64,000 nucleotides of DNA from Epithemia pelagica (lineage: Eukaryota > Protista > Bacillariophyta), in NCBI GenBank assembly GCA_946965045.2, contig OX337233.1, positions 1,798,001 through 1,862,000 of the forward strand. The letters are read 5' to 3'. A program made the translations under genes and the position numbers. Below are positions 12,110 through 59,570 of the stretch, one piece after another; the first letter of the stretch is position 1; every line of letters begins with the position of its first letter. Under the pieces are notes generated by a model that saw nothing but the letters and a program-made list of their open reading frames with translations, did not search any database and had not been told where the DNA came from.

Positions 12110-12122
12110 GGGATGTTGAGTG

Positions 12123-34795: not shown

Positions 34796-35389
34796 CAATT
34801 TTAGGCATGTGGGCACACTTGGAATCCAATGTGATATGTCATAGATGGGTGTCATGGAGTATCCAATGGTGACAGAGGATGTGTTAAGGAAAAAGTTTGA
34901 GCATCTACATGTTGCCGGAGGCCTAATATTGGTTGAGTTCTATCTAGTTGAACTATGTGCCCAATGGTACGTTTTCGCCCGTAATGGGCACACCCAGATA
35001 GAAGGCACTAGAGTGTCTCTTGTTCAGAGTATTCGGTATTCGTACTCGTACAAATACCGAGTCGAGAGACAAGTCTTGTGGTACTCACCATTGATAATCG
35101 CGCCGGCCGAAAGTCTCGCTCCCATACAATTATTTTTGATCTGTTACATTTCCATGGTGGACCGTGCTCCACACCGTTCCCCATAGATCCTTGCGATAGA
35201 CTGTCATCTAATCTAACTCTCTCTTAGTTCTGTGCGAAGAAGTTTAAGTATAGCCAATCGTCACAATCTTCGGAAACGATTCCATTGAGGCGGCGATTGC
35301 AACACAATCAATACACCGACAAGTTCCCGGTCGAACAAAACCAGGGTTAAGCACAAAAGCCAGCTACACAGACCAACTCATATGGCGTG

Positions 35390-38778: not shown

Positions 38779-39161
38779 AGGGAGGAGAAAAGATTTTCAG
38801 ATAGAAAAATGAGGGGTTGGATTCCTTTCGTCTGTCATTGGTCAGTTTTGGATAAAAAATAATGTCAGGGAATGTCTGTCAGGAGTCAGGACTCAGGACT
38901 CAGGACCCCAACCACAACCACCCCCAACCAACCCCAAACACCAAACACACAAACCCAATCCAGAATCGGTATTGCATAGTAGGAGTACAGAGTACGAGTA
39001 CTCATAAAATATGAAGACGATCCGTTGAATCATTTCTTAAGTGACCATGACCATGTGATTGATGGTGTCTCCTGCGAAAAAGGGACTGAAAACTATCCAG
39101 TATGCGTTCCATCAGATCATTTCAAGCTGACAGAGATGACAAGATTTGTCTGTCTCATAAT

Positions 39162-39432
39162 TTGTTCAGTCACAAATATGTCACAGTCACCTTGGCAATC
39201 AAAACAATCGAACTTACATTCTGGGATACGGCAACGAGTGAAAAATAAAGTTCTACCATCGGATGATAGACAGGCCGAACCTTCATTACACAAACTATTG
39301 ATCGGGGGAGGGAAAGGTGTGGCTTCTGACCATAAACCGTCTTCGAGTTTACTGTAGTAAAGATCTTCGCTGTATTTGGAATTAATTCCGGTGAATTTCG
39401 AATCGTAGGTTTTCTTAGTGACAATCCGCCTG
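39162..39432 (-). pseudogene. Bacteroidota PD40/OmpA-family gene, 3' fragment (continuation of 49447-50166)
   Basis: This frame is not in the ORF track and was read by hand: RRIVTKKTYDSKFTGINSKYSEDLYYSKLEDGLWSEATPFPPPINSLCNEGSACLSSDGRTLFFTRC...CQGDCDIFVTEQ, a PD40 repeat signature. Confidence 0.85.
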
Positions 39433-39712
39433 CCCTCGGCGAATTGCTTGCTAACGCTGCAGTCCTTTGGTAGCTTTAGGGAAAGACTCCGCTGGTTGGT
39501 TGTGGCTTCTGATGACTAGGAGTCATCGGGAGCCTGCCAACAGCGGAAACGCTGAGGAGTAGATCATCGGGATCTAACCCTCTAGCGTCTGCACCACATG
39601 TCTTTGCCTTGACTAGCCACCACAGCTGACTGCGGAGTGTGAGGGAGTAGCCGATAGGACGATTGGAGGGCGTAGGACATGGGCACAAAGATACGGTTGC
39701 GGAAGAGGTGAG

Positions 39713-40693
39713 ATGAGTTCTGCAGCTCGGAGAAGAGAAGTAAGCGAAACGACGGCTGAACAACTGGATCGTTTAAAAACAGTTGTCGAGGCACAACGCA
39801 AAGAATTGCACTGCGCTTTAGGAGGAGTGGATATCGCGCAAACCGAGCTGGATAAGACTCGCGTGTTGCACGCCCAAGAGCGTCAACATTTGGAAGACGT
39901 GCAAGGCGGAATACTTGCATCCAAAGAGGCGTCGGTGATTCAGACGCAGAAAAACGTGCGAGAGTTGGTGGGCGACCATCAAGCGGAGATCGATCGACTA
40001 GTGACCCGTGTGTGTGAAACTTTTGCGGAGGAAGGAGGAGACGGGGAAGACTTCGTGGAAACGGTGTTTCGAAGAGCATCGCCAAGCAACAAGAAGGTCG
40101 TGGTGGCTCTAGAGCTGTTGTTTCCGCACCCGGAAGACCAAGAAGTCGTTTTCCACCAGATTTGTGGATTGGCCTTGGCTGGCGGACGGGAGAGGCCTTC
40201 TGCAGAGGAGGTTGTGGAACAAAAAGTGGCCGTTGTTCGTGAGTTGTTCGCACAGAACTCTGCCCGCCGTGGATTGCCTGTGCCAGTTCCCGGAGGGAGA
40301 GCCGCGACGGCTGCCGCAGCAGCCGACGGAAAAGATAAGAAACCCGAGGCGGGTAAAAAGAGGTCCGAAGGGAAAGGAACTGGTGAAGCGTTTTCGAAGC
40401 GCGAGAAGCGTTCTTTGGAAGAGTGGTTGGGCCAACCGGGTTTCAGTACCCTACCCAAGAAGCAGCGCAAAAGCAGTACCCCTGTGAAGAGGAGCGCGAG
40501 TGTTTTGCCCCAGGAGAAAGGCAAGGGGTCGAAATCGATTAAGGAAACTCCTACGAGGGAGAATACGGCGACGAGGGAAAACACGGCGACAGAGGACGAG
40601 CCGTTGTCGGGGAAGAAACATTTACCGGAAGTGGTTGTCCTGTCTGGCGATTCGTCGGGACGCGCGTCGAAGTTGGAATCAGACAGTGAATGA
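39713..40693 (+). CDS. Antisense ORF A inside the YR retroelement (coiled-coil, basic/low-complexity C-terminus)
   Basis: 326-aa ATG ORF with a heptad-like N-terminus and an 18-bp internal duplication (TRENTA x2). It lies within the element boundaries. Confidence 0.6.
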   Translation: MSSAARRREVSETTAEQLDRLKTVVEAQRKELHCALGGVDIAQTELDKTRVLHAQERQHLEDVQGGILASKEASVIQTQKNVRELVGDHQAEIDRLVTRVCETFAEEGGDGEDFVETVFRRASPSNKKVVVALELLFPHPEDQEVVFHQICGLALAGGRERPSAEEVVEQKVAVVRELFAQNSARRGLPVPVPGGRAATAAAAADGKDKKPEAGKKRSEGKGTGEAFSKREKRSLEEWLGQPGFSTLPKKQRKSSTPVKRSASVLPQEKGKGSKSIKETPTRENTATRENTATEDEPLSGKKHLPEVVVLSGDSSGRASKLESDSE

Positions 40694-41286
40694 AGATGGA
40701 GGAGATGGCCGAGTTGATTGACGAGCTGGATCAGATGGCGGATAGGCAGGCCCAAATGGCCGAGATTATGGGGGAGTTGGGACGGATGGCCGAGAGGCAA
40801 GTGGAGATCTCTAGTCGATTGCTTGAATTGAAGGAATTGACGGAGAGGAGAGTGCAGCAGGCGATTAATGTGGTGGCGGCAGCGAACGCGGCTGTGGCCG
40901 ACGGAGGAGGAGGGGGGGAGTGGGAGCCCGATGGAGTGGGCCCAACGGGCAGAGATGGAATGCGAGAGGGCACACCACGGGGCCGAGAGGAAGGGTCGAC
41001 GGCCCGTGGAGGAAGATGGGGCTGGCGAGTGGCAGGCAAAGGGGTGGGTGGACCGAGTCCCCGTGGACGTACGAGTCCACGAGCACAAGGTGGATTTCGG
41101 GGTCGGCGGGCGAGCCGTGGATCGGAGGAGCGTTTCAAAGTTGGGGAGCGGGTCCGGATTCGAAACCCAAACGATCCCGCTGACCCAACTGGGCGGGTGG
41201 TGAAGGTAACAGACGCACGTATCCACGTGGAGACCAACAATGGCGTGCGTTATTCTCGAGCGGACAAGAACGTAGCGAGGATTTAA
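40690..41286 (+). CDS. Antisense ORF B inside the YR retroelement (coiled-coil + RG-rich linker + KOW/SH3-like domain)
   Basis: 198 aa; starts in an ATGA overlap with the ORF A stop. C-terminus FKVGERVRIRNP...TGRVVKVTDARIHVETNNG is KOW-like. Confidence 0.65.
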   Translation: MKMEEMAELIDELDQMADRQAQMAEIMGELGRMAERQVEISSRLLELKELTERRVQQAINVVAAANAAVADGGGGGEWEPDGVGPTGRDGMREGTPRGREEGSTARGGRWGWRVAGKGVGGPSPRGRTSPRAQGGFRGRRASRGSEERFKVGERVRIRNPNDPADPTGRVVKVTDARIHVETNNGVRYSRADKNVARI

Positions 41287-41354
41287 TGTTGGAGCGGACG
41301 AAATAGTGATACCATAACAGAATAGTGAGATACATTTGATGTGAATAGTGGTAG

Positions 41355-42767
41355 TTAAATATTTAGGACGCCCGCAATGGCCGCTTGACTATGAGGACCA
41401 ATTGCTTTCGAGCAGTCACGGAGGTAGTGTTTGATCGAGTCTTCTTGCCATCTGAGTCGGAAGGCAATTTGGGGAAGGGGAACTTGAACGTTCCACAACG
41501 CCACAGCGGCTGTGACGCGTGTAGAATGGGCAACGAGCAAGTGGGCGTGACGCCGGTGGTAATTGTGAGGGTTTGGGTACGCCTCCAGGCAAGCTTGACG
41601 GAGGGCTTTGATGATATCGGCCGACCGAAGGTAGGCTATTTTCCCCGGTTTTACCTGATAGGAGGCCAGGGGCAGGTGGGCTCCGACTTGGAGGGAGAGG
41701 GAGCGGCGGGCAATTGAACAGGATGCGAGCACGGGACAGAGATAAGGGTGGCCGGAACGACGGAAGATGCGTTTCGTGAAATTATGAGCGCTTTTGTCAT
41801 GCCGAAAGCGGATCTGGACTGCCGAGACGGTGTGCTCGTGTTTGGGGAGGGAAGCAAGTGGAAGCATGTCGTTCGCTTGAGTCAAGAAGACGAAGTCACT
41901 GGAGACAAAGGCAATAGGTCGGTCGTTCCAGGATGGATCATTGGGACAATTGGGAACGGCCGCGAAGACAAACTTTGAGCCAGAGGTTTGGGCAAATTCA
42001 CTGGCACGGGAGCCGGTGAAGAGGCCAAGCCGGACCCAGTCGAAGAGAGTTGCGTCAAGTGACGAAGGAGGGGCCCCGACTGCACGGCAATAGAGCACGC
42101 TAAGGATGGCATCGGTGATGGGTTCCTTACGATCGCGTGGACGTTGCCAGCGACGATGAAATTGTAATGGGTCGGATAGCATTGGGTGCAGCAGGGTTGA
42201 GTTGGTTGGGTTGGAGATGTTAACAGGGCGGTTGAGGGCAACCTGAAGTGCGGAATGGGCAGCAGTTACGTAAGATTGAATGGTATCTGCCGCCAGGTCG
42301 GACCTCCGGTAGTAGTTCTCGCCGTTTGTGACGTGATGTAGGTAAAGGTGGAGGATGTGTATGCATTCGTTATCGGTCAGGCGAGATAAAAGTTCGGGGG
42401 TGAGGTGATTGCGAGCGGACCATCGGGAAAAGTGAGCGCCTCGAGAGTCCAAAGTTCGATCATTCTTGTTCCTAGGTCGTCCTCGGTCCTGTTGAATTTG
42501 AAGTTCGTTAATATCACTGATAGCAACCTGGAGGGCACGCGGTAGGCGGTGGATGGGTCCAGCACTGGCTTGGACTGCTCGATAACGGAGGCCCAAGTGG
42601 GCGCAAGGGACGGGCGGGACAACAGGTCGGCATTGTGATTGAGCTCGCCCGCAATATGCGAGGCCTGTAATTGAACGGGAATAGGGGCAGAAGTGAGCAT
42701 GGCTTGAAAAAGACGAGCAAGACGACGAGTTGCGGGCCGCTTGGCACGGGCGGCATGGGAGAGCCAC
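41355..42767 (-). CDS. Tyrosine recombinase of the retroelement
   Basis: LGLFTGSRASEF (Arg), FRHDKS (Lys), HSTRVTAA (HxxR), LRWQEDSIKHY (Trp/Tyr). Overlaps the RT ORF by 391 nt in another frame. Confidence 0.9.
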   Translation of the reverse strand: MALPCRPCQAARNSSSCSSFSSHAHFCPYSRSITGLAYCGRAQSQCRPVVPPVPCAHLGLRYRAVQASAGPIHRLPRALQVAISDINELQIQQDRGRPRNKNDRTLDSRGAHFSRWSARNHLTPELLSRLTDNECIHILHLYLHHVTNGENYYRRSDLAADTIQSYVTAAHSALQVALNRPVNISNPTNSTLLHPMLSDPLQFHRRWQRPRDRKEPITDAILSVLYCRAVGAPPSSLDATLFDWVRLGLFTGSRASEFAQTSGSKFVFAAVPNCPNDPSWNDRPIAFVSSDFVFLTQANDMLPLASLPKHEHTVSAVQIRFRHDKSAHNFTKRIFRRSGHPYLCPVLASCSIARRSLSLQVGAHLPLASYQVKPGKIAYLRSADIIKALRQACLEAYPNPHNYHRRHAHLLVAHSTRVTAAVALWNVQVPLPQIAFRLRWQEDSIKHYLRDCSKAIGPHSQAAIAGVLNI

Positions 42768-45229
42768 GAGAGCGCCGACGTGTTGTCGGTGCGCATGGAG
42801 ATGACAAGGGTCTGGGGTTGCGGGGTGGCGTGAGAAGCCACTCGCTGCAGGAACCAGAAGTTTATGAGAAGGACGACGAATTCAAGCAAGTTGATGTGCC
42901 ACAGGGCATCGGGCGTGTCTTGAGTTGGATCGGATAATTTGGTGGACTGCATATCTTTTGGCAGGATGAAGCCCAGGCGAAGTAAGTCGGGTTTGGTCAG
43001 TCTCCACATGAAGGGGTAGTGGGTGGATAACCAGCCTCCCAGCCCTTCAATGGAGGCGTCGCCCAAAATTTCAAATTGCGAAACCCGCGGGATGCATAAA
43101 GCAATGGGACGGGTCCAAATGTGGGTCCGAGAAGAATGGAGGGTGGCCAAGAGCGTTCGGAGGTCCATAACGGTTTCTCGGTTGAGGGTGAACCGGGTTT
43201 TGTGCCAAAAGGAGGCGGCACGGGTGGATTTGCCTGCTGCTGCGGTGGCACGGAGGCGGTCGTTGAGTGCATACTGTAGGGACAACGTGTAATAGATGCC
43301 CAAGAGTGAGACTGGGGCGCTGTGACGGACGAGGCCCAGAATCGTGGCCGCCATTTGCGGGGAAAGCCGACGCCCGTCGGAGGGCGTGGTGGGAAGGTCG
43401 AGGGCGTGTTGAAGATAGACCTGTAGTTGTGTCTGTTTATGGGACGGCCAGGAAATTGTCATAGTTCGAGTGTTGATGATATACCCCAAGAATTTCAGGC
43501 TGTGACTGATGTCACGCACAAATTTTATTGGATTAATAGGGTCGGGTCGATGGGGGTCTTCGTTGGGGAAGCCGAAGGTGACGTATGCGGCGAGAATACT
43601 GCTATTGACTAACCGGTGGATCTCCGAGCGGATGGCCGCTCCACCGGTGTCGTCAACGAACGGAGCATACACCGGACGAGGAAAGGAGGACGGTTGGGAT
43701 GCTAGCAAGTGGGAGGTGCCTTGATTGAGAGCGTCGGGAGTGGCGGTCGTTAAGGTTCTGAGGGTGCGGGGGGACGGAGGGGGTGGGATAGCAATGGTGT
43801 CCGCCAAGAGAGTACGAGCGGAAGTGAGCTCGGCAAGGTAACGAGAGAGATGGGCTCGTAGCTCCCCCGGTAGCATGTAGTAGGAAGGACTGTTTTTGGC
43901 GCCAAAAATCATTCCAATGGGTATGATTAGGAACCAGCCGAGGACGCTTGCAAATGCTAAGGCAGCGTTGGGGTTGTATGTGACCCGACGGAAGGCGGCA
44001 CTGATATCATCGGCGCTGAGCAGTATGTCTTCCGAGGGATGGTCAATACGCAGATTGTAGATGTACCGCAAAAAGCGTAGGAAAGCCGTGCCGTAAGCCA
44101 CCGCGGGGTTACAGTCATCGTCATGTCCAGCATCAGGAATTTGGGCATTGGTGTTGCCGTCATCAGTGTCTGTGATTTTGGAGCTTGGATCGATGCACAA
44201 GCGGCCGGTGTCGCCGATGCGGTGGGGTTTGGGCGCTACCCAGTTAATGAGTGAAATGAAAAGACCTGGGAGGAACCGCCAGATAATGCGGGGAAGGAAA
44301 AGATGATACTGTAGCTGTTCCTCTTTCTTGAACTTTTTGGTGATTTCCTCTAAGTTTTCTTGGACCCCGGGGTAGTTGTCAAGGAGGTTGCGTTGGGAAA
44401 CGGCAACGCGACTACAGGAATAGTGGCCTGCGAGAGGGGCGCCCAGGTGAAAAAGTTGCCAAGTGCGGGCATAGTCCAACCGTGGATAGTCCGGTGGGGG
44501 CTCAAAAGCTTTGACGCGGTCAATGATGTCGAAGGTGTCTGCCAGGCGTCTGTGATGATTATTGTAGATTCCGCCAAGCCAGCGGTACATGTCCGCATAG
44601 ACGAAGTTTGCGCGACAAAGGGCAACGGCAAGCAGAAAAGCCTTACGGAATGGAAGGGGTTGGGATTTGTCTTCGCAGGGGGGTATGCGACAGACAGCGA
44701 GAGAGGTGCCATGAGCAGCGGCAACGCGGAGACGATGATAGAAGTGGAAGCTTGGCGAGGAGGCGACTAGGTTTTGTTGGTCCTGTGGGGACAAAAAATC
44801 CCATGCGTAGTGACCGAGCAATTCAGGGGAAACAACATGGGGTGAGGTTGCAGCAAGGGGAGTGCCGTCAGGAGCAGCATGGGATGTGCCGACGTTGAGA
44901 CGGTCGGGACCGAAACCAATTCTTTTGCGATGGTGTGTGAACGACCAGAGAGGGAACAGGGGAAGAATTCCCCAGTTGGGCACCAAGGAGGAAGAGGCAA
45001 GGAGGAGTTGGGAGCGATCGGCGTCGGTCAAAAAGGGGTTGACGGTGGTTAACACCGTGTGCAACGTTGGCAACTCATAGGAGATCCGAGAGGGGGCAGC
45101 ACGTGGGTGAGAAGGAAATACTGGTAGCTTGGGGACAGTAGGGACAGCCTCAGTAGTGGGAGCGGGAAGGGAGAGGAGAAGATCTGCCGTAGAGGTGGGA
45201 TAAAATGTTTCTGGTGAAGTGGGAGGCAT
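42377..45229 (-). CDS. Reverse transcriptase / RNase H (DIRS-type)
   Basis: SADDISAAFRRV, GMIFGAKNSP, FVDD, LKFLGYII; RNase H motifs GDAS, HINLLE, TDNTSA and NHNADLLSR. Confidence 0.92.
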   Translation of the reverse strand: MPPTSPETFYPTSTADLLLSLPAPTTEAVPTVPKLPVFPSHPRAAPSRISYELPTLHTVLTTVNPFLTDADRSQLLLASSSLVPNWGILPLFPLWSFTHHRKRIGFGPDRLNVGTSHAAPDGTPLAATSPHVVSPELLGHYAWDFLSPQDQQNLVASSPSFHFYHRLRVAAAHGTSLAVCRIPPCEDKSQPLPFRKAFLLAVALCRANFVYADMYRWLGGIYNNHHRRLADTFDIIDRVKAFEPPPDYPRLDYARTWQLFHLGAPLAGHYSCSRVAVSQRNLLDNYPGVQENLEEITKKFKKEEQLQYHLFLPRIIWRFLPGLFISLINWVAPKPHRIGDTGRLCIDPSSKITDTDDGNTNAQIPDAGHDDDCNPAVAYGTAFLRFLRYIYNLRIDHPSEDILLSADDISAAFRRVTYNPNAALAFASVLGWFLIIPIGMIFGAKNSPSYYMLPGELRAHLSRYLAELTSARTLLADTIAIPPPPSPRTLRTLTTATPDALNQGTSHLLASQPSSFPRPVYAPFVDDTGGAAIRSEIHRLVNSSILAAYVTFGFPNEDPHRPDPINPIKFVRDISHSLKFLGYIINTRTMTISWPSHKQTQLQVYLQHALDLPTTPSDGRRLSPQMAATILGLVRHSAPVSLLGIYYTLSLQYALNDRLRATAAAGKSTRAASFWHKTRFTLNRETVMDLRTLLATLHSSRTHIWTRPIALCIPRVSQFEILGDASIEGLGGWLSTHYPFMWRLTKPDLLRLGFILPKDMQSTKLSDPTQDTPDALWHINLLEFVVLLINFWFLQRVASHATPQPQTLVISMRTDNTSALSWLSHAARAKRPATRRLARLFQAMLTSAPIPVQLQASHIAGELNHNADLLSRPSLAPTWASVIEQSKPVLDPSTAYRVPSRLLSVILTNFKFNRTEDDLGTRMIELWTLEALTFPDGPLAITSPPNFYLA

Positions 45230-45286
45230 TTCATCAGACCACGGCGAACGGGCGCAAGTCGAACCTGGGCAATGATGTGCCGGTAG

Positions 45287-48200
45287 TCACGACGAGGGCG
45301 GGGGTTGTTGAGGGGCGTTTGGACGGTTCGGACGGTCTGAAGCCATGTGGGCTGCAAATTCCGGTGTAGGTTGGAGAAGGTGCCGAACGCGATCATGGTG
45401 ACAGAACTCCCAGAGCGGTTTAAGGGAGAATAAGGGCCAGTTGGAGATAGCCTGGGGAGAAAGGCAGACGTGGTGTCGATTGCATTGCAACGGTTGGCCT
45501 TCCGAGTTTGTGCGTGAACGATGGGGACCGGTGCACCCGACAACAGAGTTCTTGTCGATGTACATAAAGCAATATTGCTTTTGGTCGAAACGGGGAATGG
45601 TGAGGGAAGACGCGAGGTCGGCAAGGAGCTTACCTGAGTGGGTATAACGTTTTTTCCCTGCCGCAGTGAGGGTGACAAGCGGGACGAGAGCTTTTTGGCC
45701 AGGGCGACGCTGGGGTTGAGCGGAGTCAGAACGAGCACGCTTGGGCGGTGGTTGGTCGGCAGCACGGTCAGGAGGACGGTCCGAGGGAGAGCGACGCCGT
45801 TGGGCACGATCGTAGCGGTCAAGAGGAGAACGAGAGTCACCCCGGTGATCAGGACGAGATGGTAGGAGATAGTTGGGGGTGGAGCGGCAAAACAAGGGTG
45901 ACATGGAGTTGGTGTGTTGGTGGGAGAGTATTGTAGGAGCCGTAAATAATAGGGTAAAGGTGGATCTCCAATCCAAACAGTAGGTGAGATTTGAGTCGGT
46001 TGAGTGCGGGCTCACATCGTAGATGAGAGTGCACTGGGGAACAAAGCCTTCAGGGTCTGCGGTGGCGGGGCAAGCTATTTTGGTACGATTCTGGGCGCCC
46101 CAGCGGAGGAATTGTTGAAACAGGTCACAGGTGTGATGGAGAAGGGCCTGAGACAGTTGTAGCGTGTGACTGGGTTGCGAGGAAGCCAATGTCGACCATG
46201 CATCTCGAGTTTGCGCTTGATCAAACTGATGAGCTGCCCAAAGCAATTGACCGGCAAGGGGACCGCGGAGAAGAAAGGGGCTAAAACCTGGAGGGAATTG
46301 GGGGAAGGAGTCGTCGTTGGTGAGTACCGTGTTTAAGAAAAACACAATATGATGGAAGAACAGCTTAAACTGGGTGCAGGAGAGACCTTGTTGCGGGAGG
46401 CGACCCTCTGGGGACAAGGGGATGGACCAGAGGAAGTGCCAAGGAGTGAGGGATAGATATAATGACTTAGGGTCGTCGAGATGAAGAGTCTGACCTGCGT
46501 TGATTCGGAATGTTCTCAGTGCTTTGCGCGGGGCTTCTGCGTGAAGGAAAGACTGAGCAAAATCGACGCGGAACGGAGCCACCGGGTATTTGGAAGCTTC
46601 AATGGCGGCGGCGAGGAGGTCAATGGCCGCTACCTCGGCGGCAGAGCTGCGATGATCAGCGCCTGCGTAGGGCAGAACTTGGCGCAGCCAATCGTTGTTG
46701 AGATGGCTGGGGGTATGGAGAAGCTCGTGGGAATAGGAGGGACGTCTCGTGGTTGTGGGCAAGTTGGGGTCAACCAAACGTAGATCAGTAGGTAGAGCAA
46801 CGATGCCCAGGAAGGCCCATTGGACTACATGAGGTGGGAGTTGGTCTGTTTCCTGGAAAATAAAGCGGTCAAAAGTAAATTGACTGCGCTCTTCCATGGT
46901 GCGTCGGATGAGGGGAAGATACGCAGAGGAAGCCAAGGTGGAATGCACATATTTGAGCCGTGTGCTCGTAAACCAAGTTGGGTTGTCAACCGGGAGATAC
47001 CACGGTGAGGTAGTGGTGGAAACCAGGGGTGCGTCCCAGGCCTGACGTTGGTGTGCCAAGGGGTTGAAGGATTGGGAGTGGTAGGACTCCATGGCTGGAG
47101 AGGCTGGGTGATAATGAGTGGGTCGACGTGGTGGGTTGTGGGGTGCATGAGGAGAGGCGTTGGAATAGGCATTGGCTGTAGAGGTTGAAGGAGACCGCTG
47201 GAGGCGGGGGGGAGGAAGGGGGGGGGGGGGGAGGAAATGCTCCTGTCGCGAGGGAGGACGAGGCGGAAGTTGCTGAATGGGGGTTCGAGTGGTAAAGGGC
47301 GGTGGGTCCGGACCGACGAGGAGACGATTCTGATGGGGTTGAGGTGGCGGCTGCTGTGGTTCCAGCTGTTGAGGGGGTGGAGGAGCACGCTGTTGTGGTT
47401 CCATCGGCTGGGGTTGTAGAGGAGCACGAGAGACAGGGACTGGGACAGGAAACCCTGGCGAGGGGTCCAGGGCTGCTGGTGAGGAAATGCGAGCCGTTGG
47501 AGGGTGAAAGGCTGTAGGACGACGAGAGAGGCTTTCTGCGGGAGGTTCCAGAGGGAATGGTCGAACTTCCGGTGTCTGGAGAGAGGAAGGAGGGTTTTTT
47601 TGCGAGGGTTTGTCCGGGGAATCGACATTCAAACGGGTAACCGTGTTGGGTTGGGTTGGGTTGAGGGACGAAGATGGTGACCGATCGTGTGGGGTGGATA
47701 TGACGCGTTGAGCAAGATGATCGTTTGGGAGGTGATTCAAGAAATCCGGAAGGTATTTTTGGACATCAAAGGAAGAAAAGGATTTGAAACCGTAGGAGGT
47801 GGACCATGACTGTGTTTGAGGGCGAAAGAGGAAAGGAACGTATGTGTGGGTGTTGTCCACGTGAGGGATGTTTTGAGGGAGGAACAGGTCGACGTCTTGG
47901 GAGGATAGCATGTTTGCTTTCTCCCGAAAGAAAGTGAAGAATTTGGTTCGCATGGTATGCAACGGATTGTTTTGGAGGAGTGCATCTGAGAAAAGCTTGG
48001 TTGTAAGGGAGAAGAAAGGATGCACAAACAGGGCTTCATAAGGGTGGATACGAGCCGGATAAGAACGGGGAAGGTTGGTAGAGATGGGGACGTTCTTGAG
48101 GGTGGTGAGGTCGGATGCTATCTGCTTGGAAGTGTGCCAAACAGTAGCAAAGTCGTCGGCGCGTTGACTCACGGTGAGGAGCCAATCGTTGACAAAAGGG

Positions 48201-49393: not shown

Positions 49394-49446
49394 AGCTAGT
49401 GTGATCTAGCTAGACTACGTGTAGCTACCTGAGTGTCCTGTCGCTG

Positions 49447-50166
49447 ACGCACAATAGAATGAAATCATCCCTCATGGAGATTGACGGACCGTAATCTGCT
49501 ACTTTTCTATCGTTGATTTCCGATCCCATGTTGAGGAGTACACTTCTTGGAGGGTGTAAAGTGTCTATTTGCTTTCTGTATTCAACCAACTCGTAGTAAT
49601 AGTCAATAGGAACGTAGTAATCTTTTTCTAATTCCGTTAACTCATCGTAATGGTTTCTAATTTTGAAGTACTGTTGGATTTCTTTAACAACTTCTGCTTT
49701 GTGGTGTTTTAAAACGAGGCGATAGGCAGCTTTGGCCTTATCCAACATTTCTTTCATAAAGTTGGGCTAGCATCCAAAGGAGATCTGTCTCTTCTGAAAA
49801 GTTTAAAATGCCCCAGTATGCGATGTATTCCTCTAAAGCGTTCATGAGAGTTGCCTCATCTCCTCGACTTTGAAGGGTTTCTATTTTCTTGACTTGATTT
49901 GGGTTAACATATCGGTCGACTTTATTTATGTTGTTGAACTCGAAAAAATAATCTTCGGTACTGCGCGACTGAATTAACAGGTTTTTGTTAATCTTTTTGG
50001 CTGTGTAACCCTTTTCGTAAGCTTCGTTTTCCTTCTTAAGATCTTTCTTGGTGAACTTTTCCTCTTTGTCTTGGGCATAAGATACAGTAATGCTGCAGAC
50101 CAATGTCAGCATAAAAAGGATTTTACAGAACTTGGGTGAACTGATGTGTGTTTTTATCCAGTACAT
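49447..50166 (-). pseudogene. Bacteroidota PD40/OmpA-family gene, 5' part (frameshift near 49750; cut by the YR element)
   Basis: Sec signal ending SYA|Q. Frame changes at LYERN/MLDKAKAAY. VEYRKQIDTLHPPRSVLLNMGSEINDRKVADYGPSIS starts a PD40 repeat. AT-rich, intronless and divergent from lon. Confidence 0.75.
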
Positions 50167-50216
50167 TAAATTAAATCGGCCCCTCCGGATAAATATAGGT
50201 ATATTACAAAATCGTT

Positions 50217-50232
50217 TGGCATAAGTATTGCA
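50217..50232 (+). promoter_or_regulatory. Candidate sigma-54 (-24/-12) promoter upstream of lon
   Basis: TGGCATAAGTATTGCA: GG and GC separated by 10 nt, matching the TGGCA-N-TTGC consensus, ~90 bp upstream of the likely GTG start. Confidence 0.5.
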
Positions 50233-51106
50233 AAACTTACGCTTATATTCCAAAAATAGGGATTTTACTCGTATAGTTGCACTAATTGTGCCAATTTGAC
50301 AGAAGAGAATTAAAAAAAGTGAAGAAGGACACGATAGAAAACTTAGTTATAAACCAGCTAATGAGTGAAGAGAAAAACGAAATGATTCCTCTTTTAACGG
50401 CTGAAAAAGAGAAAGAACTGCAGAATGAAGGGGTTCCTGACGTACTGACAATTCTTCCTGTCAAGAATACAGTCTTGTTTCCAGGGGTTGTACTACCAAT
50501 AACGGTTAGCAGAAAAAAATCAGTGAAGCTAGTGAAGAATTGCTACGGCAATCAGGGTTTGGAAGTTGTAAATTCACTTTTTTCCAATTTGTACGAATTT
50601 AAGCACAAATTAGCCAATTTGGCCAAAATGAACTCAATTTTCTTTATTTTTCAACGCAAATTGACTCCAAAAACTCCATTTTCTCTCTTTTTCAATCAAA
50701 TTTCCATGTCACATTCAATTTTGTACTATTCTCATTCCAAATTAAATACGTAAGTTGATTCGCAGAGATTTAAAAATGAATTTTAACTTCAAACTCAATT
50801 CACCGTTCTTTATTATACGAATTCTATCACCAACTCAACTCGTTGTCTTCTAAGACAAAATTCGAATTCACAAATTTAACCATCATATTCAACATTATTA
50901 TATCACACGATACACGGTACTCCATTGTATTTGAGTGACCATAACATACTTGAAACTTAACATATCTCTTTACCTTTTCTTGTCTTCTTGTTACCTCCTA
51001 TCTTCTTACTACAATTCTCCATTCGATGCATTGCAACTATCTCATACAGATATCTGACTCCCCAACCACAGCCACATCTTCCCTGTCTCCCAATACTTCT
51101 TTCTCT

Positions 51107-52687
51107 ATGTCTTCCACAGCAGGAGCGGTGCAAGGCACCTCTGCAGACGACGACAATATTCAACAAGAACAAGAACAAGGACAAGCAGACGAAGCTCCTC
51201 CTTCGAATGAGAATGAGAACAACACATCCAACCATAACAATGCCTCAATCAATAAAAAGATCCCACCCCTCTCCGAAGAAGCACGAGCCTTAGTCAAGGA
51301 AGAAAAAGAAGCCATCTTTTTCCGTCCACCTCCCAGGAAACACTTCAAGAACCTTACCACTCTTTGGGGTAGTGTCGAGCATCTTGATTGGGACAGGGTG
51401 GCACGTTATCGAGAGAATATCCTTGATAAGAGCAAACTGAAGAAAAATCAATACCCTGGACTCATTCAGTGCTACGAAACAGCCATGCTCTGGTTGAGTA
51501 AACCCTCCACCAATGCGTTTGCTGAGAGGGTGTTTTCCATGGCTTCCTGGTTTGCATCAAACCGACGAATGAATCGACAGGGCAGCAAGGTTTTTGAGAT
51601 GAGAACCCTGGATTGCATCAACAGGAAAGTTTTGGAAAGCATTTGGGTTGCCGAACAAGAGTTGGTTGAACAAGAGATTGTAGAAGGCAAGACTGTTTTG
51701 ACTGTATCGGATGAGCACGGTCGTGAATCAGTCAACAACCAGGATGTACTACTTCTCTCTGAGCAGTCTCATCAAGGAGATGTGCGTAGATACCATCAGA
51801 TGATCAATGGTCTCCCAGACCACATGGACTACAATGACAAAGCGTCCGAATCTTTGGTGGTGGAAGATGATGATGGTCCCCAAAAATTCTCCTATATTGG
51901 GGACGATGGCAAGACATACGAAGCAGACTCCATCGACATAGTCGACATTACCAGAGATGATGTCCCTGAACCAAGCAAAGGTGAAGTCGAAGGTAATGGT
52001 GAAGGTGAAGGTGAAGTTCCCACTGAAAACCAGGCACCTGCTACCCAAGCATTGACATCAACAGTGACCGATCAACATCAAATGAATGAATCTGATGACG
52101 AAAGTGATGGGGACTTAGGGGATGCCGATCTGTTAGAATATTTGAAAGAACGAAAGGACGAAGTTGAACACGAGGGAGACATGACGGTTGTTTCCTTATC
52201 TACTGTCCAAACTAAGGGGCAGGACACTGCCCGGTCGAGTGCTGGAGGGAAAACCTCTTTGGATTCGTCATCGAAGAAGAGGGCTGCCTCAAAGACATCG
52301 TCGGTGTCCTCTGACAAGGGAGGAACTGCCAAGAAACAGAAACGATCCGTAGCGGGTAAGAAGCCATCTCCTGAAGAACGATTGAGAGCCAAAAAGAAGG
52401 ATGGAAATAAAGATGGAAAGAAACGAGCAACTGTGACGAGTCTTCCCTTACGCCGCAATACAAGGACTCCATCGCCTAATAGGCAAGGGTCAAAAGGAAA
52501 AAAGGCGGTAAGACGTTCTCCACGCGATAAGAAAAGGAAGCAGCAGTCAAAATCCCGTGCACAAAAGGCAATAGTGTATGAAGTCGAGGACACTGAAGAG
52601 GAAGACAATGAAGAAGAGGAGGAGGAGGAGGAGGGCTCATACAGTGATGATGACGACGAGGATGGCAACGATGATACGGAAGATTAG
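51107..52687 (+). CDS. In-frame internally deleted hAT transposase (N-terminus fused to C-terminal region)
   Basis: FRPPPRKHFK..LW...GLIQCYE matches element 1 FRSPPKSIFK..WW...GILRCFE. It then joins directly (~51478) to TAMLWLSKPSTNAFAERVFS; the BED finger and both catalytic Asp regions are absent. Confidence 0.75.
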   Translation: MSSTAGAVQGTSADDDNIQQEQEQGQADEAPPSNENENNTSNHNNASINKKIPPLSEEARALVKEEKEAIFFRPPPRKHFKNLTTLWGSVEHLDWDRVARYRENILDKSKLKKNQYPGLIQCYETAMLWLSKPSTNAFAERVFSMASWFASNRRMNRQGSKVFEMRTLDCINRKVLESIWVAEQELVEQEIVEGKTVLTVSDEHGRESVNNQDVLLLSEQSHQGDVRRYHQMINGLPDHMDYNDKASESLVVEDDDGPQKFSYIGDDGKTYEADSIDIVDITRDDVPEPSKGEVEGNGEGEGEVPTENQAPATQALTSTVTDQHQMNESDDESDGDLGDADLLEYLKERKDEVEHEGDMTVVSLSTVQTKGQDTARSSAGGKTSLDSSSKKRAASKTSSVSSDKGGTAKKQKRSVAGKKPSPEERLRAKKKDGNKDGKKRATVTSLPLRRNTRTPSPNRQGSKGKKAVRRSPRDKKRKQQSKSRAQKAIVYEVEDTEEEDNEEEEEEEEGSYSDDDDEDGNDDTED

Positions 52688-52704
52688 GGACAAGTACTTA
52701 GTGA

Positions 52705-54545
52705 TTAGTAGTTTATTGATCGAACGATCTTGTTAAGATCTGTGACTGTAGGGTATTTCAACATGAAGTCTCCAACACATCGTCTCACCTGTTGTTTTGT
52801 ACCCTTCGACCCAAGTAATTGTCCAAGTGAACCAAACAGCGGGTTTACTTCTTGCCATTGTTGTTTGGGGATCCAGCACTCGAGTAAATTAGAGCATTGC
52901 GATCCATCTTGGCAATATGGGGGAATCCATTTGAGATGTCTTGCCCATTTGAGGACGTGGATGTCGCTTGGAATGCCATCGTTTCTCCGGAATGAATACG
53001 AAATCACCAAAGTTGCCGTCTTGTACCCAACACCAGGAAGAGTGGTTAATTCTTCGATGGTAATTGATGAGGGGAGTTGGCCATTATGGCGGACGATGAA
53101 ATAGTCGGCAGCATTGACTATTCGTTCTCCATTCACATAGTATTTGCCTGATTCCGACATGAGGCTACAGACAACATTCATGCCATAAGTGGTGGCAATG
53201 TCGATTGTAGATTGGGCATTGATGAATCCCATTGAGAACAGCCTTGGTACCAACAATGCTAATTGCTTGTCGGAAGTACTGCTGCTCATAAGAATGACCA
53301 CTAGGCACATAAAACCACGGTCAGCATCGGGTGAATCGGCATATTCATCGATCCATTGTTCCCATGTGTCCCGGGGTGCCAGTAGATTGTATGTGTTTGT
53401 GATGTACTGGTGAAGAGAGAGGAGATCGTTCAAGCATCTCAACCTTTCCTCCTTGGGTGTTGGATGATTCCATTTTAGTGGGGGGTCTGGTCGAACAATA
53501 GCCAATTGTCAATTTGGGCATTGTTCCTGGAAGATGCTGAATTGAATTGTTGTATTGATTGATGCCAGTCCTTTTCAATAAAGACTGCTTGAACTTGTCA
53601 AGACGTGCTCGGGTAAGAGGACTCCCTTGAAAGACATTTCTCTTTCAGAATCCAAAGATAGGATACGGAGCATGTTGTTGGGTTTTGGGTTCTAGATGAT
53701 GGTGGTTCTTTTCTGTAGGTGAAAGATGTGGAGGACAATTGGATATAGGGGTTTCACTGGCATTGGAAGGTGGACTGGGTGATGAGGTAGGTGGGAGGGT
53801 AGGACAATTAGATATGTGAATAGGACCTGGTGATGGAGTAGGCGACAGGGGAATGATGGGGCTGTCCGTGATATTGACACTGTAGTTCGGAGGAATGTTC
53901 TTTTTGAGTCGATGGAGAACATCTTCTATAACAAGGTTGATGAGGAGAGACATGTCAGGTGGGCAGCCATAGGTCTGTTGTGATGTGTTATGAAGCAGGA
54001 AAGGGGTGTCGTGTTGTGATAACCAGGATAACAGCAATGACGAGATTCGACGGTCTTGGTTTTTTCTTGCACAGTTCTCCAAGTGACTCTGGATGAAATC
54101 AACAATCTTGAGATAGGTTTCATTGGGTTGAATGTAGAAGGAGGGTTGGCAGGTGATTTGAAGGTTGGAAACAAGTTGTGTTGAATTGTTGATTGGTGGT
54201 GAGTTGTTGGAGGCATAAGGAATGTTGTCGTGACGTATTTGATTTTGTTATTCTTGAACAACGTGGTGAAGAAGGGAGGAAAACTTGGTATCAATAAACA
54301 TTCGGAGGAAGGATAGATTCTTTGTTCCGAAAGATATGGAGCTTGGGATGAATTGGACATGAGGAACAATGGTAGCATCGAAGCGGCAGAGCCAGCAAAG
54401 TACAGCCTTGGAGATACACTGGGATATTGCATCTTCTGTCTTGGGGGGGGGGGGGGGGGGGGGGTTGATGTTCAACTTGATCCAGGACAAAAGAGACAAG
54501 AGATTGATTTGTTGCAAGTCGGTGTTCAATTCGACATGAACATTT
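52705..54545 (-). pseudogene. Transposon-borne N-domain + endonuclease III-like glycosylase (glycosylase domain intact in 52705-53505; upstream part frameshifted)
   Basis: PRDTWEQWIDEY, RGFMCLVVILMSSSTSD, SGKYYVNGERIVNAADYF, HhH ELTTLPGVGYKTA and GIPSDIHV. N-domain pieces lie in ORFs 54248-54529, 53645-54082 and 53345-53578. Confidence 0.88.
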
Positions 54546-57446
54546 GACTATGATGATCTGAGACATGCTGATTTGTGGCTCCCTTGGAGGACAAGTGTTC
54601 AGTGTTCAGTTCGGTGTCCGTGTTACAGCAAACAAAGGGGGTTGGGTTTTGGTGGGGAGTGTGGAATAAGAAGTGGACATTGTTGACACTGTATTGCATA
54701 TTGGAGTAGAATGGCGTAGATTGTAGGTGAATGGAATCAGAAAGGATCGGGGTGTTGGGTGGAATTGAGTTGTGACACGGGTAATTCATGAATTGAATTC
54801 GGAATTTGGCAAATTCAATTTTCTCTGAATTCGTGGTAGGGGAGTGTGAATTCAATTCATTACAGAATGGGCGACGAATTCATATGGGAATTCAATTCAT
54901 AGCTAGGTAATATATGAGTTTCGAATTGAAGTTAATTTGTGTGTGTCGATATACGAGTTTTGTTTCATAATTTAATTCGTGATAGTACAGTATATGAATT
55001 GTATTTCAAACTTAATTCGTCTTATGTCAAAATACGAATTAATATTCTTATTTCATTCAGATATATAAAGAAATGAGTTGGTTGAATTAAGTTAATTTCA
55101 GGAGATTTCGCCTGTGAATTATTTTCGGTAATTCAATTCAGATTTTAATATTTACAACTTCCAAACCGTGACGGCAATGATGGGATTCTTGGTGTAGTCG
55201 CTCAGCGAAAAATTAGTGATGAGCCAAAATCATCTGACCAATATAAAGTTGGAACAGTAGCTCGCATTGTAAAAATGCTGGTTTTACCTGATGGTAATAC
55301 GACAATTATCATTCAAGGTAAAAAACGATTCGAGGTAAGGGAGTTTCTTGAAGAAGATCCATATATCAAGGCTGAAGTAAATGTGTTAGGAGAGGAATTT
55401 CCAAATCCAAAAAACAAAGAGTTCAAAGCATTACACCAAGCTTTGAAGGATTCAGCGCATAAAATTGTAGCCTTAAATCCTGAGTTACCGCCAGAAGCAA
55501 AAGTAGCTATTGACAATATTGAAACGGCTAGTTTTTTGACTCACTTTTTGTGTTCGAATTTGAACGTAGATGTAAAGTCAAAGCAGCAATTGCTGGAGAC
55601 CAACCGTGGTCAGGAAAGAGCAACTCATTTATTGGAGCATTTGAACAAAGAGATTCAGATGCTAGAGATCAAGAATGAGATTCAATCTAAAGTGCATACG
55701 GATATTGATCAGCAGCAACGCGATTATTATTTGAGGCAACAGATGAAGATTCTGCAAGATGAGCTTGGAGAAGATACTCCCGAAAAGGACCTAGATCGAT
55801 TAAGAAAATTAGGTAATGAAAAGGACTGGCCTTTATACGCGGCCAAACATTTCGATAAAGAACTCCAGAAGTTGAGTCGAATGAATCCTGCTGCAGCAGA
55901 TTATCCGGTGACGTTGAATTATGTGGAGTTCTTGGTAAATCTTCCTTGGAACGAAACTACTGAGGATAATTTTGATTTAAAAAGAGCAAAACGCATTCTT
56001 AATCAAGAACATTATGGCCTTGAGAAGGTGAAAGAGCGTATTCTTGAGTATTTGGCCGTTCTTAAACTAAAGAACGAAATCAAAGGGAATAATGATGGAA
56101 CAATGCGTGGTCCTATTTTGTGTTTGTATGGTCCTCCTGGTGTTGGTAAAACATCCTTAGGAAAGTCAGTGGCAAGGGCGTTGAATCGTGAGTACGTCAG
56201 AATGTCTTTAGGTGGCATGCATGATGAAGCAGAAGTACGTGGCCATAGAAAAACCTATATCGGTGCAATGCCAGGTAAAGTTATTCATAACCTCAATAAA
56301 GCTGGAAGCTCAAATCCGCTATTTGTTCTTGACGAAATTGACAAAGTAGGACGTGATTTTAAGGGTGATCCGAGCTCAGCATTGTTAGAGGTCTTGGACC
56401 CTGAGCAAAACAGTAGTTTTGTTGATAACTACCTTGAAGTTGAATATGACTTGAGTAAAGTGCTCTTCATTGCAACTTCAAATGCGATGCATACCATTCA
56501 ACCAGCCTTGCGAGATAGAATGGAAATCATCGAGATCAGTGGTTATACACAAGAAGAAAAAGCTGAGATCGCTAAAAGACATTTGATCCCTCGTCAAAGA
56601 GAGGATCACGGATTGGAGGAAGATGACGTGATATTCACTAAGCCGGGAATTGTCAAAGTCGTTGAGGGTTATACAAGAGAATCTGGTGTACGTGGTTTGG
56701 ATCGGAAGATCGGTGCAATTATGCGCTTTGTAGCGAAGTCGATAGCACTTGAAGAAGAGTATACGAAGAAGATAGGACCAAAAGAGGTCGAAGAGATATT
56801 GGGTGCTCCTGTATTTGAAAAAGATGCTTACGAGAAAAATGAGGTGGCAGGTCTAGTAACTGGTCTTGCTTGGACTTCTGTTGGAGGAGAAATATTGAAT
56901 ATCGAAAGCATCTTGAGTAAAGGCCGTGGTAAATTGACTTTAAGCGGTCAGTTGGGTGATGTTATGAAAGAATCAGCCATCACAGCTCTAAGCAATTTGA
57001 AAGCCAATGCTGCTGCCTTTGGCATTGATCATCGTTTGTTTGATCAATATGATCTTCATATTCACGTGCCGGCTGGAGCTGTTCCTAAAGACGGTCCTTC
57101 GGCAGGCATTACGATGTATACTTCCATATTCTCTTTATTTACCCAACGAAAGGTAAAAGAGAAGTTGGCTATGACAGGTGAGGTAACGTTGACAGGTAAA
57201 GTCTTACCGGTTGGCGGAATTAAGGAAAAAATATTAGCTGCAAAACGTGCTGGTATCACCGAAATTATCTTGTCCAAGCGAAATAAAAAGGACATTGATG
57301 AAATCGAAGAACGATACATCAAAGGCTTAAAAATCAATTATGTGAAGCGCGTTGAGGAAGTAATCGATATTGCTGTTTTAAAAACAAAAGTGAGTAAACC
57401 TTTCCCATTGACAATTGATGAGAAGGAAAATTCAAAAAAGGCTTAA

Positions 57447-58468
57447 CGCCAATCGTAAAGAACGGGTTTTAAGCTTATCGGAGTATCAAATAGCTGTGTC
57501 CCATAAATTTTATGGGAGTCAACCAGATGCTCGAATTTGCTGTCTCCCATGCGAGCGCCTTAACAGAGGCTGTTTTAACCTTAAAACACAGGTCTCATCG
57601 AATTACAATGGCCCCCTCCGTCATACAAGTGGCACCTAGTCTGTGATGGTGGCACCTAGTCCATGATGGTGGCACCATGATGTGACCATGATGTAGCGAC
57701 CATGATGTAGTGATACGAGAAGTCAACAAAATAACTCTTCACATTTACAAATCTCTGTTTATTCCTATCTACTGTTGTTCTCACAATCCATGGATTTCTG
57801 TCGTGTTGTCCTCACCATTATCGTTGTTGTCTCGTGTTTTGTTCTCGTCTTCTTCCATATTGCTGTTGTCGGCAGTCCTTCTCCTCTTTCTTGTGTATAT
57901 CCGCCTCCTCATCATCAGCTTCCTCGGGTACTGTTGTACTGGCTTCAGGTGCAAGGTTGGTAGCACCTTGGACGGGTCACTTGGCATCTGGGATCGATAT
58001 CTTGGACGGGTTGCTCGGCATGTGGCTCGATGAGCCATCGCGACGAATCCAGTTGCGCCGACTCACGGTCGTCATTTTCCGCAGGGAAGGGTCGGAAGGA
58101 CATTTCCTTTGGTCAAGGCCTTCTTTGCCATATAGACTTGCAGAATGGAGAGTCCTGCAACAATCGGTGCAGATGTCACATATATAAAGGGTACTAAAGT
58201 TGGGGCTCAGCCGATGGAAGACGTAAATGAGTGAAAATGAGGAAAATCACCAATTTTTCAAGTTCAAATATCAAGCTCATGAGTGGATCTTTACTGTAGA
58301 CTATCATATATGAAGTTGTTCAGAATTCTAAGATCTATCGAACGATGAAGTCAGATTTGGATGAAAGTGAATTTTGATGAAGTTAATGGAAGTCAAAGTT
58401 AAGGGAGTAGCGCATAGCTGTCTCCCATACATGGGAGACAGCTATGCGCTACTCGATTACGATTGGCG
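57447..58468. mobile_element. piggyBac-like non-autonomous element (1022 bp) inserted at TTAA overlapping the lon stop codon
   Basis: TTAA at 57443-57446 and 58469-58472. Perfect 12-bp TIR CGCCAATCGTAA. Internal inverted repeats (GAGTA....ATAGCTGT.TCCCAT) are separated from the TIRs by 22 bp (left) and 2 bp (right). Removal leaves lon and porQ 42 nt apart. Confidence 0.75.
58405..58454. repeat. Perfect 24-bp-stem palindrome at the right end of the piggyBac-like element
   Basis: GAGTAGCGCATAGCTGTCTCCCAT-AC-ATGGGAGACAGCTATGCGCTACTC. Confidence 0.95.
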
Positions 58469-58514
58469 TTAATAAAAACAGGAAATCTACGTTCAGGATA
58501 GCAAACAACAATAT

Positions 58515-59570
58515 ATGCCCAAGTTAACTTTTTTGCTTTTACTCTTTGCTAGCCTTACGGTGTGTGCACAGGTAGGAGGATTGTACACCTATAACTTTTT
58601 GGATTTATCAGAAAATGCGCGTGTTGCTGCCCTGGGTGGTCAAAATGTAAGTTTGTCAGACGATGATCCCAATATGTTCAAGTATAATCCTGCCACCATC
58701 AACAATGATATGATGGGTGGCGCCTCGTTCAATGTTGCTCCTTTCGTCACAGGAATTTCTAAATTCAGTACCGTCTACGGTCACAAACTAAAGGGTAAAA
58801 TCAACTTAGTAGGGGCGGTAGAATCGATCAATTATGGTAGTTTTCTTCGAACAGATATTGCTGGTAATGAGCTAGGGGAGGTGTCTGCCAGCGAAACAGC
58901 TATTACAGTCGGAACGAGTCATCAAATTGATAATTATCGGATTGGCGTTAACCTGAAATTGGTATCGTCAAATGTGGCTGATTACTTTTCTTTTGCAACG
59001 CTGATGGATATTGGAGGCTTATATGTTCATCCAAGAAAAGATCTGAAAATCGGATTAGTGTTTAAGAACGTTGGAGCGGTCGTTAAGAAGTATCATTCCG
59101 ATGCCGATATGACGGTACCGTTTGATGTGCAATTTGGCTTAAGTTATAAGCTCGAGCACATGCCGCTACGCTTTAACATGTTAACGCATCATTTGCATGT
59201 ACTTGATGTACAATATTTAGATCCGACACGTACATTTACGTTTGATGATTTAGGTGAAGAGGTGCCTGGAGAAAAACAGCTTTCTGAAAAGATTGCAAGG
59301 CATTTTACCTTTGGAGGCGAATTTGTCTTCTCTAAGAACTTTTACCTGAGAGCAGGTTATAATCATTTGAGAAGAAGGGAATTGAAATTGGAAAATGCCG
59401 CAACGGCAGCCGGATTTTCTTTTGGAGGAATGATGAGAATGCGCGGGTTTGAATTCAACTACACTAGAGCGATTTATCACGTTTCTGGTGGAACCAATCT
59501 GATCACGATTTCAACGAATTTTGGATACATGTTTAAAAATGGCTTGAAGAGCACCGGAGAGACATTCTGA
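58515..59570 (+). CDS. porQ: Bacteroidota type IX secretion system protein PorQ-like outer-membrane barrel
   Basis: Signal ending VCA|Q, FLDLSENARVAALGG, NPAT, alternating beta-strand pattern, LRAGYNHLRRRELKL and GFSFG. Directly downstream of lon. The last ~10 codons may be read-through into host DNA. Confidence 0.75.
   Translation: MPKLTFLLLLFASLTVCAQVGGLYTYNFLDLSENARVAALGGQNVSLSDDDPNMFKYNPATINNDMMGGASFNVAPFVTGISKFSTVYGHKLKGKINLVGAVESINYGSFLRTDIAGNELGEVSASETAITVGTSHQIDNYRIGVNLKLVSSNVADYFSFATLMDIGGLYVHPRKDLKIGLVFKNVGAVVKKYHSDADMTVPFDVQFGLSYKLEHMPLRFNMLTHHLHVLDVQYLDPTRTFTFDDLGEEVPGEKQLSEKIARHFTFGGEFVFSKNFYLRAGYNHLRRRELKLENAATAAGFSFGGMMRMRGFEFNYTRAIYHVSGGTNLITISTNFGYMFKNGLKSTGETF

Follow-up and report, generated by a model that had tools for sequence, protein, structure and literature searches.

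A Cytophagales DNA fragment cut by three transposons and very probably integrated, apparently without function, in the nuclear genome of Epithemia pelagica, a pennate diatom

The window analyzed here is a 64,000-nucleotide stretch of the genome of Epithemia pelagica, a pennate diatom (C6:1798001-1862000). It lies 1.8 Mb into a scaffold of 3.86 Mb, in an assembly of 23 sequences that totals 60.5 Mb. Positions 39170-59570 of the window hold bacterial DNA, which totals 4,717 bp once three interrupting elements are removed and which comprises a truncated PD40/OmpA-type gene (-), a full lon gene (+) and a full porQ gene (+). We are confident that this insert is a real, single-copy and apparently non-functional nuclear integration of Cytophagales DNA; i.e., a horizontal transfer that was probably dead on arrival. 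It is located between a 2-oxoglutarate (2OG) oxygenase gene on the left and a PLAC8 gene on the right, in transposon-rich surroundings. The bacterial pieces are single copy in the genome, as are both flanks of the insert. Their GC content is 39.4%, compared with 45.9% for the remainder of the window, in agreement with the original prediction of an AT-richer bacterial block of about 4.7 kb with these three genes; the start given for the block, 39162, was slightly too early, as bacterial DNA begins at 39170.

All three interrupting elements have copies that are 97-99% identical on other chromosomes, and the removal of each produced a colinear, ungapped alignment to bacterial homologues. Each removal had been expected to restore the bacterial arrangement, and this was borne out: an ungapped alignment was recovered for the first element, an 819-amino acid Lon for the second and a 42-nucleotide intergenic gap for the third. 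The first and largest element lies within the PD40/OmpA-type gene. Three copies, among them those on C1 and C2 (identity 97-98%), fixed its ends, together with a head-to-tail junction within the copy on C2. The minus strand is the coding strand, with open frames of 1,372, 969, 508 and 469 codons; on this pyrimidine-rich strand an open frame of approximately 35 codons would be expected by chance, by our own estimate from base composition. In addition to open reading frames (ORFs) of the reverse transcriptase (RT) and tyrosine recombinase (YR) types, it contains two further long ORFs, and the Atlas feature neighbors of its ORFs are eukaryotic RVT_1/Dam and Phage_integrase clusters. It is a probable, rather than proven, DIRS-like YR retrotransposon because its ORFs had no Pfam match, even at E = 10.

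A 10.0-kb element of this probable class and the restoration of the frame had been correctly predicted; the CTG junctions proposed for it had not. Removal of the CTG-to-CTG span leaves 8 and 25 nucleotides of the element ends behind, and kept the frame because 33 is divisible by three. When the true ends (39422 and 49453) are used, the PD40/OmpA-type protein reads ...DDFIL/FTKKTYD... across the junction and aligns without gaps to the homologue at the Cytophagales locus L007 (183 amino acids, 62% identical); the CTG ends are thus also excluded by the alignment, which is ungapped only with the ends used here. The left end of the YR element is variable in the number of 330-bp units it carries: none in the window, one in the C2 copy (L003:587-916) and two in the other allele described below (L098:8705-9191). 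In each unit, 174 bp of the left end and 140 bp of the right end are separated by a G-rich spacer of 16 bp; the units look like circle-junction or split-direct-repeat units.

The second element, which is hAT-like, interrupts lon. It is bounded by 21-bp terminal inverted repeats (TIRs) beginning CAGGG/CACGG and by an 8-bp target-site duplication (TSD). It has copies with 97-99% identity on C9, C5 and C10, of which the one on C9 is flanked by an 8-bp TSD of its own, GTACGAGT. A 4.6-kb hAT with an 8-bp TSD had been predicted, and only its end required correction, to 55170. The element is heterozygous or polymorphic, as an empty site with a single copy of the TSD is found in L099. Its ORFs had a weak, sub-threshold match to Dimer_Tnp_hAT (E = 0.06; 13.6 bits, cut-off 21.4) and no DDE domain was found in the element, which is therefore probably non-autonomous. 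A 266-amino acid ORF on its minus strand (52705-53505), in a region common to all full copies, has weak HhH and HhH-GPD glycosylase matches.

The third element entered a TTAA that overlaps the lon stop codon and has TTAA on both sides, as had been predicted for a 1.0-kb TTAA element. At least 12 near-full copies are present in the genome, four of them 98-99% identical, and the copy on C4 is likewise flanked by TTAA; no transposase-length ORF was present in the ORF listing for the element. The target duplication is as in piggyBac-like elements, and its termini, CGCCAATCGTAA, differ from the CCC...GGG ends usual for piggyBac; it is classed here by its TTAA target, without a superfamily. Just inside its right end is a near-perfect inverted repeat (a hairpin of approximately 22 nucleotides per arm, 58404-58455), which has a partial counterpart near the left end (57490-57525).

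A second assembly of the same organism carries the same insert, on the ENA contig ERZ21939226 ctg1357l (1,997,458 bp; pieces L098 and L099). This contig is 99.4-99.8% identical to the window over the host flank, the filler at the left junction, the bacterial DNA and the YR and TTAA elements, and has the same junctions. The hAT-like element is absent from it: the site reads ...GAATTGCT-ACGGCAAT-GATGGG..., with one copy of the TSD, and lon is uninterrupted and called as one 833-amino acid ORF. The YR element of the contig carries two extra 330-bp units on its left (left end, 16-bp spacer, right end). Eight sites differ between the alleles in the 4,717 bp of bacterial DNA (0.17%), a rate similar to that of the right stretch that extends into host DNA (55171-62559), with 13 in 7,389 bp. 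Because of the style of the contig name, and because the genome note for E. pelagica UHM3201 describes a culture metagenome assembled with metaMDBG (PMC11167328), ctg1357l is probably the other haplotype of the same culture and not an independent isolate.

Contigs assembled from individual sequencing runs (Logan) were consistent with this. A 5,751-bp contig of run X2 extends from the last 24 nucleotides of the TTAA element (58445) via porQ into host DNA past 60,900, and a 750-bp contig of run X1 crosses 59570; a 2,330-bp contig of run X1 begins 30 nucleotides inside the hAT-like element and continues through lon to 24 nucleotides inside the TTAA element. Contig depth over lon was 281 (X1) and 91 (X2), close to the values of 337 and 105 for the host flank. 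The checks proposed with the original prediction, a search for sequences spanning the junctions and a comparison of coverage with the flanks, thus both favor integration, the former at the level of contigs (porQ is joined to host DNA in contigs of both short and long reads, and both assemblies share the junctions). Run X2 carries the single-nucleotide polymorphisms of the ENA allele, and the match of its lon contig ends exactly at 55171, followed by 22 unlike letters, which fits an empty hAT site. A third haplotype was considered for run X1 and rejected as an over-reading, as Logan contigs can mix alleles.

The order and spacing of the genes in the insert match those in Cytophagales genomes. 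Lon matches the Pfam families LON_substr_bdg, AAA, Lon_lid and Lon_C, scores 868.7 bits against TIGR00763 (cut-off 608) and, as read from the sequence, keeps the Walker A and B motifs and the Ser-Lys dyad. PorQ scores 336.3 bits against the NCBIfam model for PorQ of the type IX secretion system (T9SS_PorQ, NF033711; curated equivalog cut-off 220), over profile positions 6-334 of 335. The minus-strand gene aligns to approximately residues 32-365 of PD40/OmpA proteins (782-785 amino acids) encoded upstream of Cytophagales lon; it corresponds to the N-terminal (5') 45% or so of the 756-795-amino acid proteins that precede lon in this group, which carry PD40 and OmpA matches. Its pieces have no Pfam match of their own and the gene lacks the C-terminal half with the OmpA domain, yet the identity is 62% over 183 amino acids, so that it is best classified as a truncated homologue of PD40/OmpA outer-membrane proteins and not as a complete member. 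The gene is frameshifted at 49747-49751, where homologues read LAQLYE-KN-E.. and both alleles are out of frame: an A-run of the ENA allele has one base too few, and in the window allele four more bases, which ctg1357l retains, are missing at 49751. As predicted, this is the one frameshift, and lon and porQ, 3,516 bp together, contain no stop and no indel.

The order PD40/OmpA(-)-lon(+)-porQ(+), with a lon-porQ gap of 39 nucleotides, is also found in the Cytophagales contigs L001 and L002, and in 29 of the compared loci porQ follows lon within 400 nucleotides. In a tree of 86 Bacteroidota Lon sequences, the window Lon falls in a clade of four with metagenome-assembled genomes (MAGs) of uncultured Cytophagales, with a Shimodaira-Hasegawa-like approximate likelihood ratio (SH-aLRT) support of 100. 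L007 is the sister sequence (support 93, 74% identity), and the end branch of the window Lon has an ordinary length. The Cytophagales-like donor that had been expected is thereby placed, and no close relative of it has been sampled: Lon was at most 74% identical to any sequence in a scan of GTDB genomes, PorQ at most 51% identical to any of 5.8 billion proteins searched and at most 43% identical to any sequence in JGI metagenomes. Since PorQ is no more than about 50% identical, and Lon no more than 74% identical, to anything searched, the donor is assigned to an unsampled Cytophagales lineage. The window lacks the gene that lies after porQ in relatives, and a comparison of the ORFs of 40 Bacteroidota loci with the window matched the known pieces only, with no further bacterial neighbor genes.

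The anatomy of the junctions suggests how the insert may have arisen. Bacterial DNA on the left is preceded by a 183-bp filler, a copy of a host locus 1.3 Mb away that is 98.9% identical to its source (two mismatches in 183, 1.1%); these are the only two copies in the genome, and the end of the filler, which is present in both alleles, coincides exactly with the limit of the bacterial protein alignment. An unsampled Cytophagales bacterium would have contributed an unbroken segment of 4.7 kb or more, with lon, porQ, the divergent promoter region and the 5' 45% of the PD40/OmpA-type gene, and this segment would have been joined by end joining into an intergenic double-strand break between the 2OG-oxygenase and PLAC8 genes, with capture of the 183-bp host scrap at the left junction. 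The transferred genes would have retained bacterial signals and never been used. The YR retrotransposon, the TTAA element and the first frameshift in the PD40/OmpA-type gene would then have arisen before the two sampled alleles diverged. Afterwards, the reference allele alone would have acquired the hAT-like element in lon, lost four more bases at the frameshift and changed residue 85 of Lon from Leu to Gln, while the other allele gained Lon E516K. The relative time-line would thus run from integration, through the YR and TTAA insertions and the allele split, to the hAT insertion.

Instead of direct uptake and end joining, the insert could have taken an indirect route, carried by a vector such as a giant virus or large transposon, or could belong to a more extensive foreign patchwork. 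The unrelated filler at the left junction and the 59571-60345 region, which has no assigned origin and is likewise AT-rich, would be in keeping with such a route. However, the insert is not bordered by viral or transposon termini, its flanks occur once in the genome, and the bacterial part is one colinear block with no mosaic structure. Of the alternatives considered, indirect arrival survives best, and it is nevertheless improbable.

The age of the insert was bounded from its sequence. Given that approximately 4.8% of substitutions create a stop, and taking the indel:substitution ratio as 0.05-0.2, the neutral divergence of lon and porQ has a 95% upper bound of 0.3-0.9%. One of 170 invariant bacterial Lon columns has changed (I733V), a number within the range of 0-4 seen in real bacterial genes. 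The insert is accordingly dated by its sequence to less than about 1% of neutral divergence, yet to before the split of the two alleles. It had been described as fairly recent and in early decay; the lack of stops and indels in lon and porQ, the single changed column and the small difference between the alleles fit this description, with the qualification that a transfer predating the allele split is not brand new.

A second alternative is that the transfer was domesticated, with bacterial Lon or PorQ in use by the diatom. The intact lon and porQ ORFs, the uninterrupted lon on one allele, the preserved Lon motifs and the near-invariance of the conserved columns could all be taken to indicate function. 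Several observations argue otherwise. There are no introns and no eukaryotic leader, the gene spacing is bacterial, and one allele has its lon split by the hAT-like element. Both alleles carry one radical substitution each, at sites conserved in Lon: residue 85 is Gln on the reference allele and Leu on the other, where all 86 bacterial Lon sequences have Leu, Ile, Val or Met, and residue 516 is Lys on the other allele, where bacterial Lon sequences have Glu, Asp or Asn. Four or five coding differences between the alleles are non-synonymous (K5N, K16Q, Q85L, E516K) and two are synonymous, and because this excess of about 2:1 is as expected under neutrality, lon and porQ appear not to be under selection. 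PorQ is an outer-membrane part of the T9SS and has no partners in a eukaryote. Finally, contigs from a polyA metatranscriptome (run X4) covered only 60346 onward, on the 3' side of the neighboring PLAC8 gene, and nothing over the bacterial genes. Use of these genes by the diatom is therefore very unlikely, marginally more so than indirect arrival.

The least credible alternative, in which bacterial reads of a xenic culture were misjoined into a diatom scaffold, draws on the AT-richness of the insert and on the cobionts of UHM3201, which include a Cytophagales MAG, Ekhidna (PMC11167328), and is effectively refuted by the three diatom transposons that lie within bacterial genes with exact TSDs and copies on other chromosomes, by the identical junctions in two assemblies that differ as alleles, including at the empty hAT site, by an insert depth equal to that of the host with no alternative uninterrupted contig among the Logan contigs, and by a Lon that shares just 65-68% identity with the Reichenbachiellaceae loci L011 and L015, a comparison that did not extend to Ekhidna itself. 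That the integration is real and not a chimera had been proposed from the duplications alone; the copies of the elements elsewhere with the same type of TSD and the allelic empty site bear this out.

Several points weigh against the conclusion that the insert is a non-functional integration of Cytophagales DNA joined directly into the chromosome. The reads and assemblies apparently all derive from one culture, and the two assemblies are probably two haplotypes from the same reads; moreover, the read evidence consists of assembled contigs. No high-identity donor is known, and the divergence since transfer is not directly measurable. We infer end joining with filler capture solely from the anatomy of the junction, and the right end of the foreign DNA may lie anywhere within 59571-60345.

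That region comprises 775 bp between the porQ stop codon and the polyA-supported host transcript; it is single copy, has a GC content of approximately 40% and contains no long ORF. The contigs of run X1 break in it, at 59739/59783, with a 24-nucleotide unlike end. In a 2025 biofilm metagenome (run X5), two short contigs match the insert: one at 57213-57400 (the 3' end of lon, 100%) and one at 59544-59759 (the end of porQ and 189 nucleotides downstream, 99%), and the multi-copy TTAA and hAT-like elements have no coverage in this run. These contigs could derive from the diatom, from the actual donor bacterium or from carry-over; in the case of the donor, the foreign DNA would reach beyond 59570.

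Table 1. Coordinates of the bacterial DNA, the interrupting elements and the neighboring host features in the window.
Feature	Position	Strand	Description
2OG-Fe(II) oxygenase gene	37705-38778		Left host neighbor; best homologues in transcriptomes of diatoms and other marine algae (MMETSP)
Left-junction filler	38987-39169	none	183-bp copy of host locus C6:499068-499250, inverted
Bacterial pieces (four)	39170-39421, 49454-50552, 55179-57446, 58473-59570		Sum 4,717 bp
PD40/OmpA-type gene, distal piece	39170-39421	-	To approximately residue 346 of a 756-amino acid homologue (tblastn, Cytophagales)
YR element, probably DIRS-like	39422-49453	-	10,032 bp; no TSD; ends from C1 and C2 copies and head-to-tail junction
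YR-type ORF	41358-42881	-	508 amino acids; R...HxxR...Y recombinase pattern
RT-type ORF	42377-45229	-	950 amino acids; FVDD and KFLGY reverse transcriptase motifs
PD40/OmpA-type gene, proximal piece	49454-50166	-	From signal peptide onward; frameshift at 49747-49751
lon, first 64 codons	50361-50552	+	Pfam LON_substr_bdg; final 8 bp (50545-50552) are the left copy of the hAT TSD
hAT-like element	50553-55170	+	4,618 bp; TIR CAGGGTTTGGAAGTTGTAAAT; 8-bp TSD ACGGCAAT
lon, remainder	55179-57446	+	Stop included; right TSD copy at 55171-55178; Pfam and TIGR00763 matches
TTAA-target element	57447-58468	none	1,022 bp; non-autonomous; TIR CGCCAATCGTAA, 12 bp
lon-porQ intergenic spacer	58473-58514	+	42 nucleotides, bacterial; 39 nucleotides in L001 and L002
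porQ	58515-59570	+	Intact 351-codon ORF; homologues named PorQ, Cytophagales
PLAC8 gene			Right host neighbor; 3' side within polyA-supported transcript from 60346 onward

The left host flank (3571-12124 and 27848-35013) contains several young repeats, so that some of the long ORFs there are transposon genes. They include a 6.6-kb element (98% identical to a copy at C6:2024661), a miniature inverted-repeat transposable element of approximately 150 bp with dozens of copies at 93%, and elements of 1.65 kb and 3.2 kb that are 97-99% identical to their copies. The idea that the foreign DNA is a special magnet for transposons is not supported locally: about eight young repeat insertions are also present in the 39 kb of host sequence on the left of the insert, and elements are only about twofold denser in the insert than in these surroundings.

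Nuclear integration of bacterial DNA is an established kind of event, of which the insert is a further example. Wolbachia-to-host nuclear insertions in insects and nematodes are raw, mostly non-functional and sometimes cut later by host transposons. The insert resembles them as raw, apparently non-functional bacterial DNA in a eukaryotic chromosome that was later interrupted by host transposons. In the Wolbachia case, however, the donor is an intracellular germline symbiont to which the insertions are near-identical, whereas the donor here is unsampled and presumably an extracellular associate. Claims of bacterial DNA in eukaryote genomes frequently prove to be contamination; the integration described here is very hard to dispute, given two haplotypes, an empty site in one allele and host transposons nested in the insert with their TSDs.

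In Epithemia clementina, nuclear integrations of DNA from the diazoplast, an endosymbiont, have been described (NUDTs), and these are decaying (PMC11383321). Like NUDTs, the insert is multi-kb bacterial DNA in a diatom nuclear chromosome, with a source-like low GC content and signs of decay. NUDTs are also unexpressed, have long-read support and are homozygous or heterozygous (PMC11383321), and the insert resembles them in these respects as far as the contigs examined show. It differs from NUDTs in its source, a non-endosymbiont Cytophagales bacterium and not the diazoplast, in being one colinear block and not 8-42 shuffled fragments (PMC11383321), and in being dated and proven by three nested host transposons. 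No diazoplast insert was found in the 60-Mbp E. pelagica genome, for which a poor tolerance of insertions was suggested (PMC11383321), and the insert qualifies this published idea that the small genome tolerates foreign insertions poorly. It is conceivable, though somewhat less likely than the contrary, that E. pelagica repeatedly integrates raw DNA of environmental bacteria in transposon-rich regions, with no detectable DNA of its own permanent nitrogen-fixing endosymbiont. If so, the access of DNA to the nucleus, and not the tolerance of insertions, would limit endosymbiont-to-nucleus transfer, and horizontal gene transfer (HGT) in diatoms would start from multi-gene inserts that are dead on arrival.

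Catalogues of bacterial HGT in diatoms attribute 3-5% of proteomes to this source (Vancaester et al. 2020, as cited in PMC11383321). The insert is likewise a bacterium-to-diatom transfer. The catalogued HGTs are expressed, ameliorated, often intron-bearing and found via gene models; unlike these, the insert is unprocessed DNA that retains its bacterial organization and is apparently not in use. It would represent a transfer before selection, with the bacterial operon layout intact, the frames open, no expression detected and decay that appears neutral, and it provides a non-endosymbiont baseline against which endosymbiotic gene transfer can be judged.

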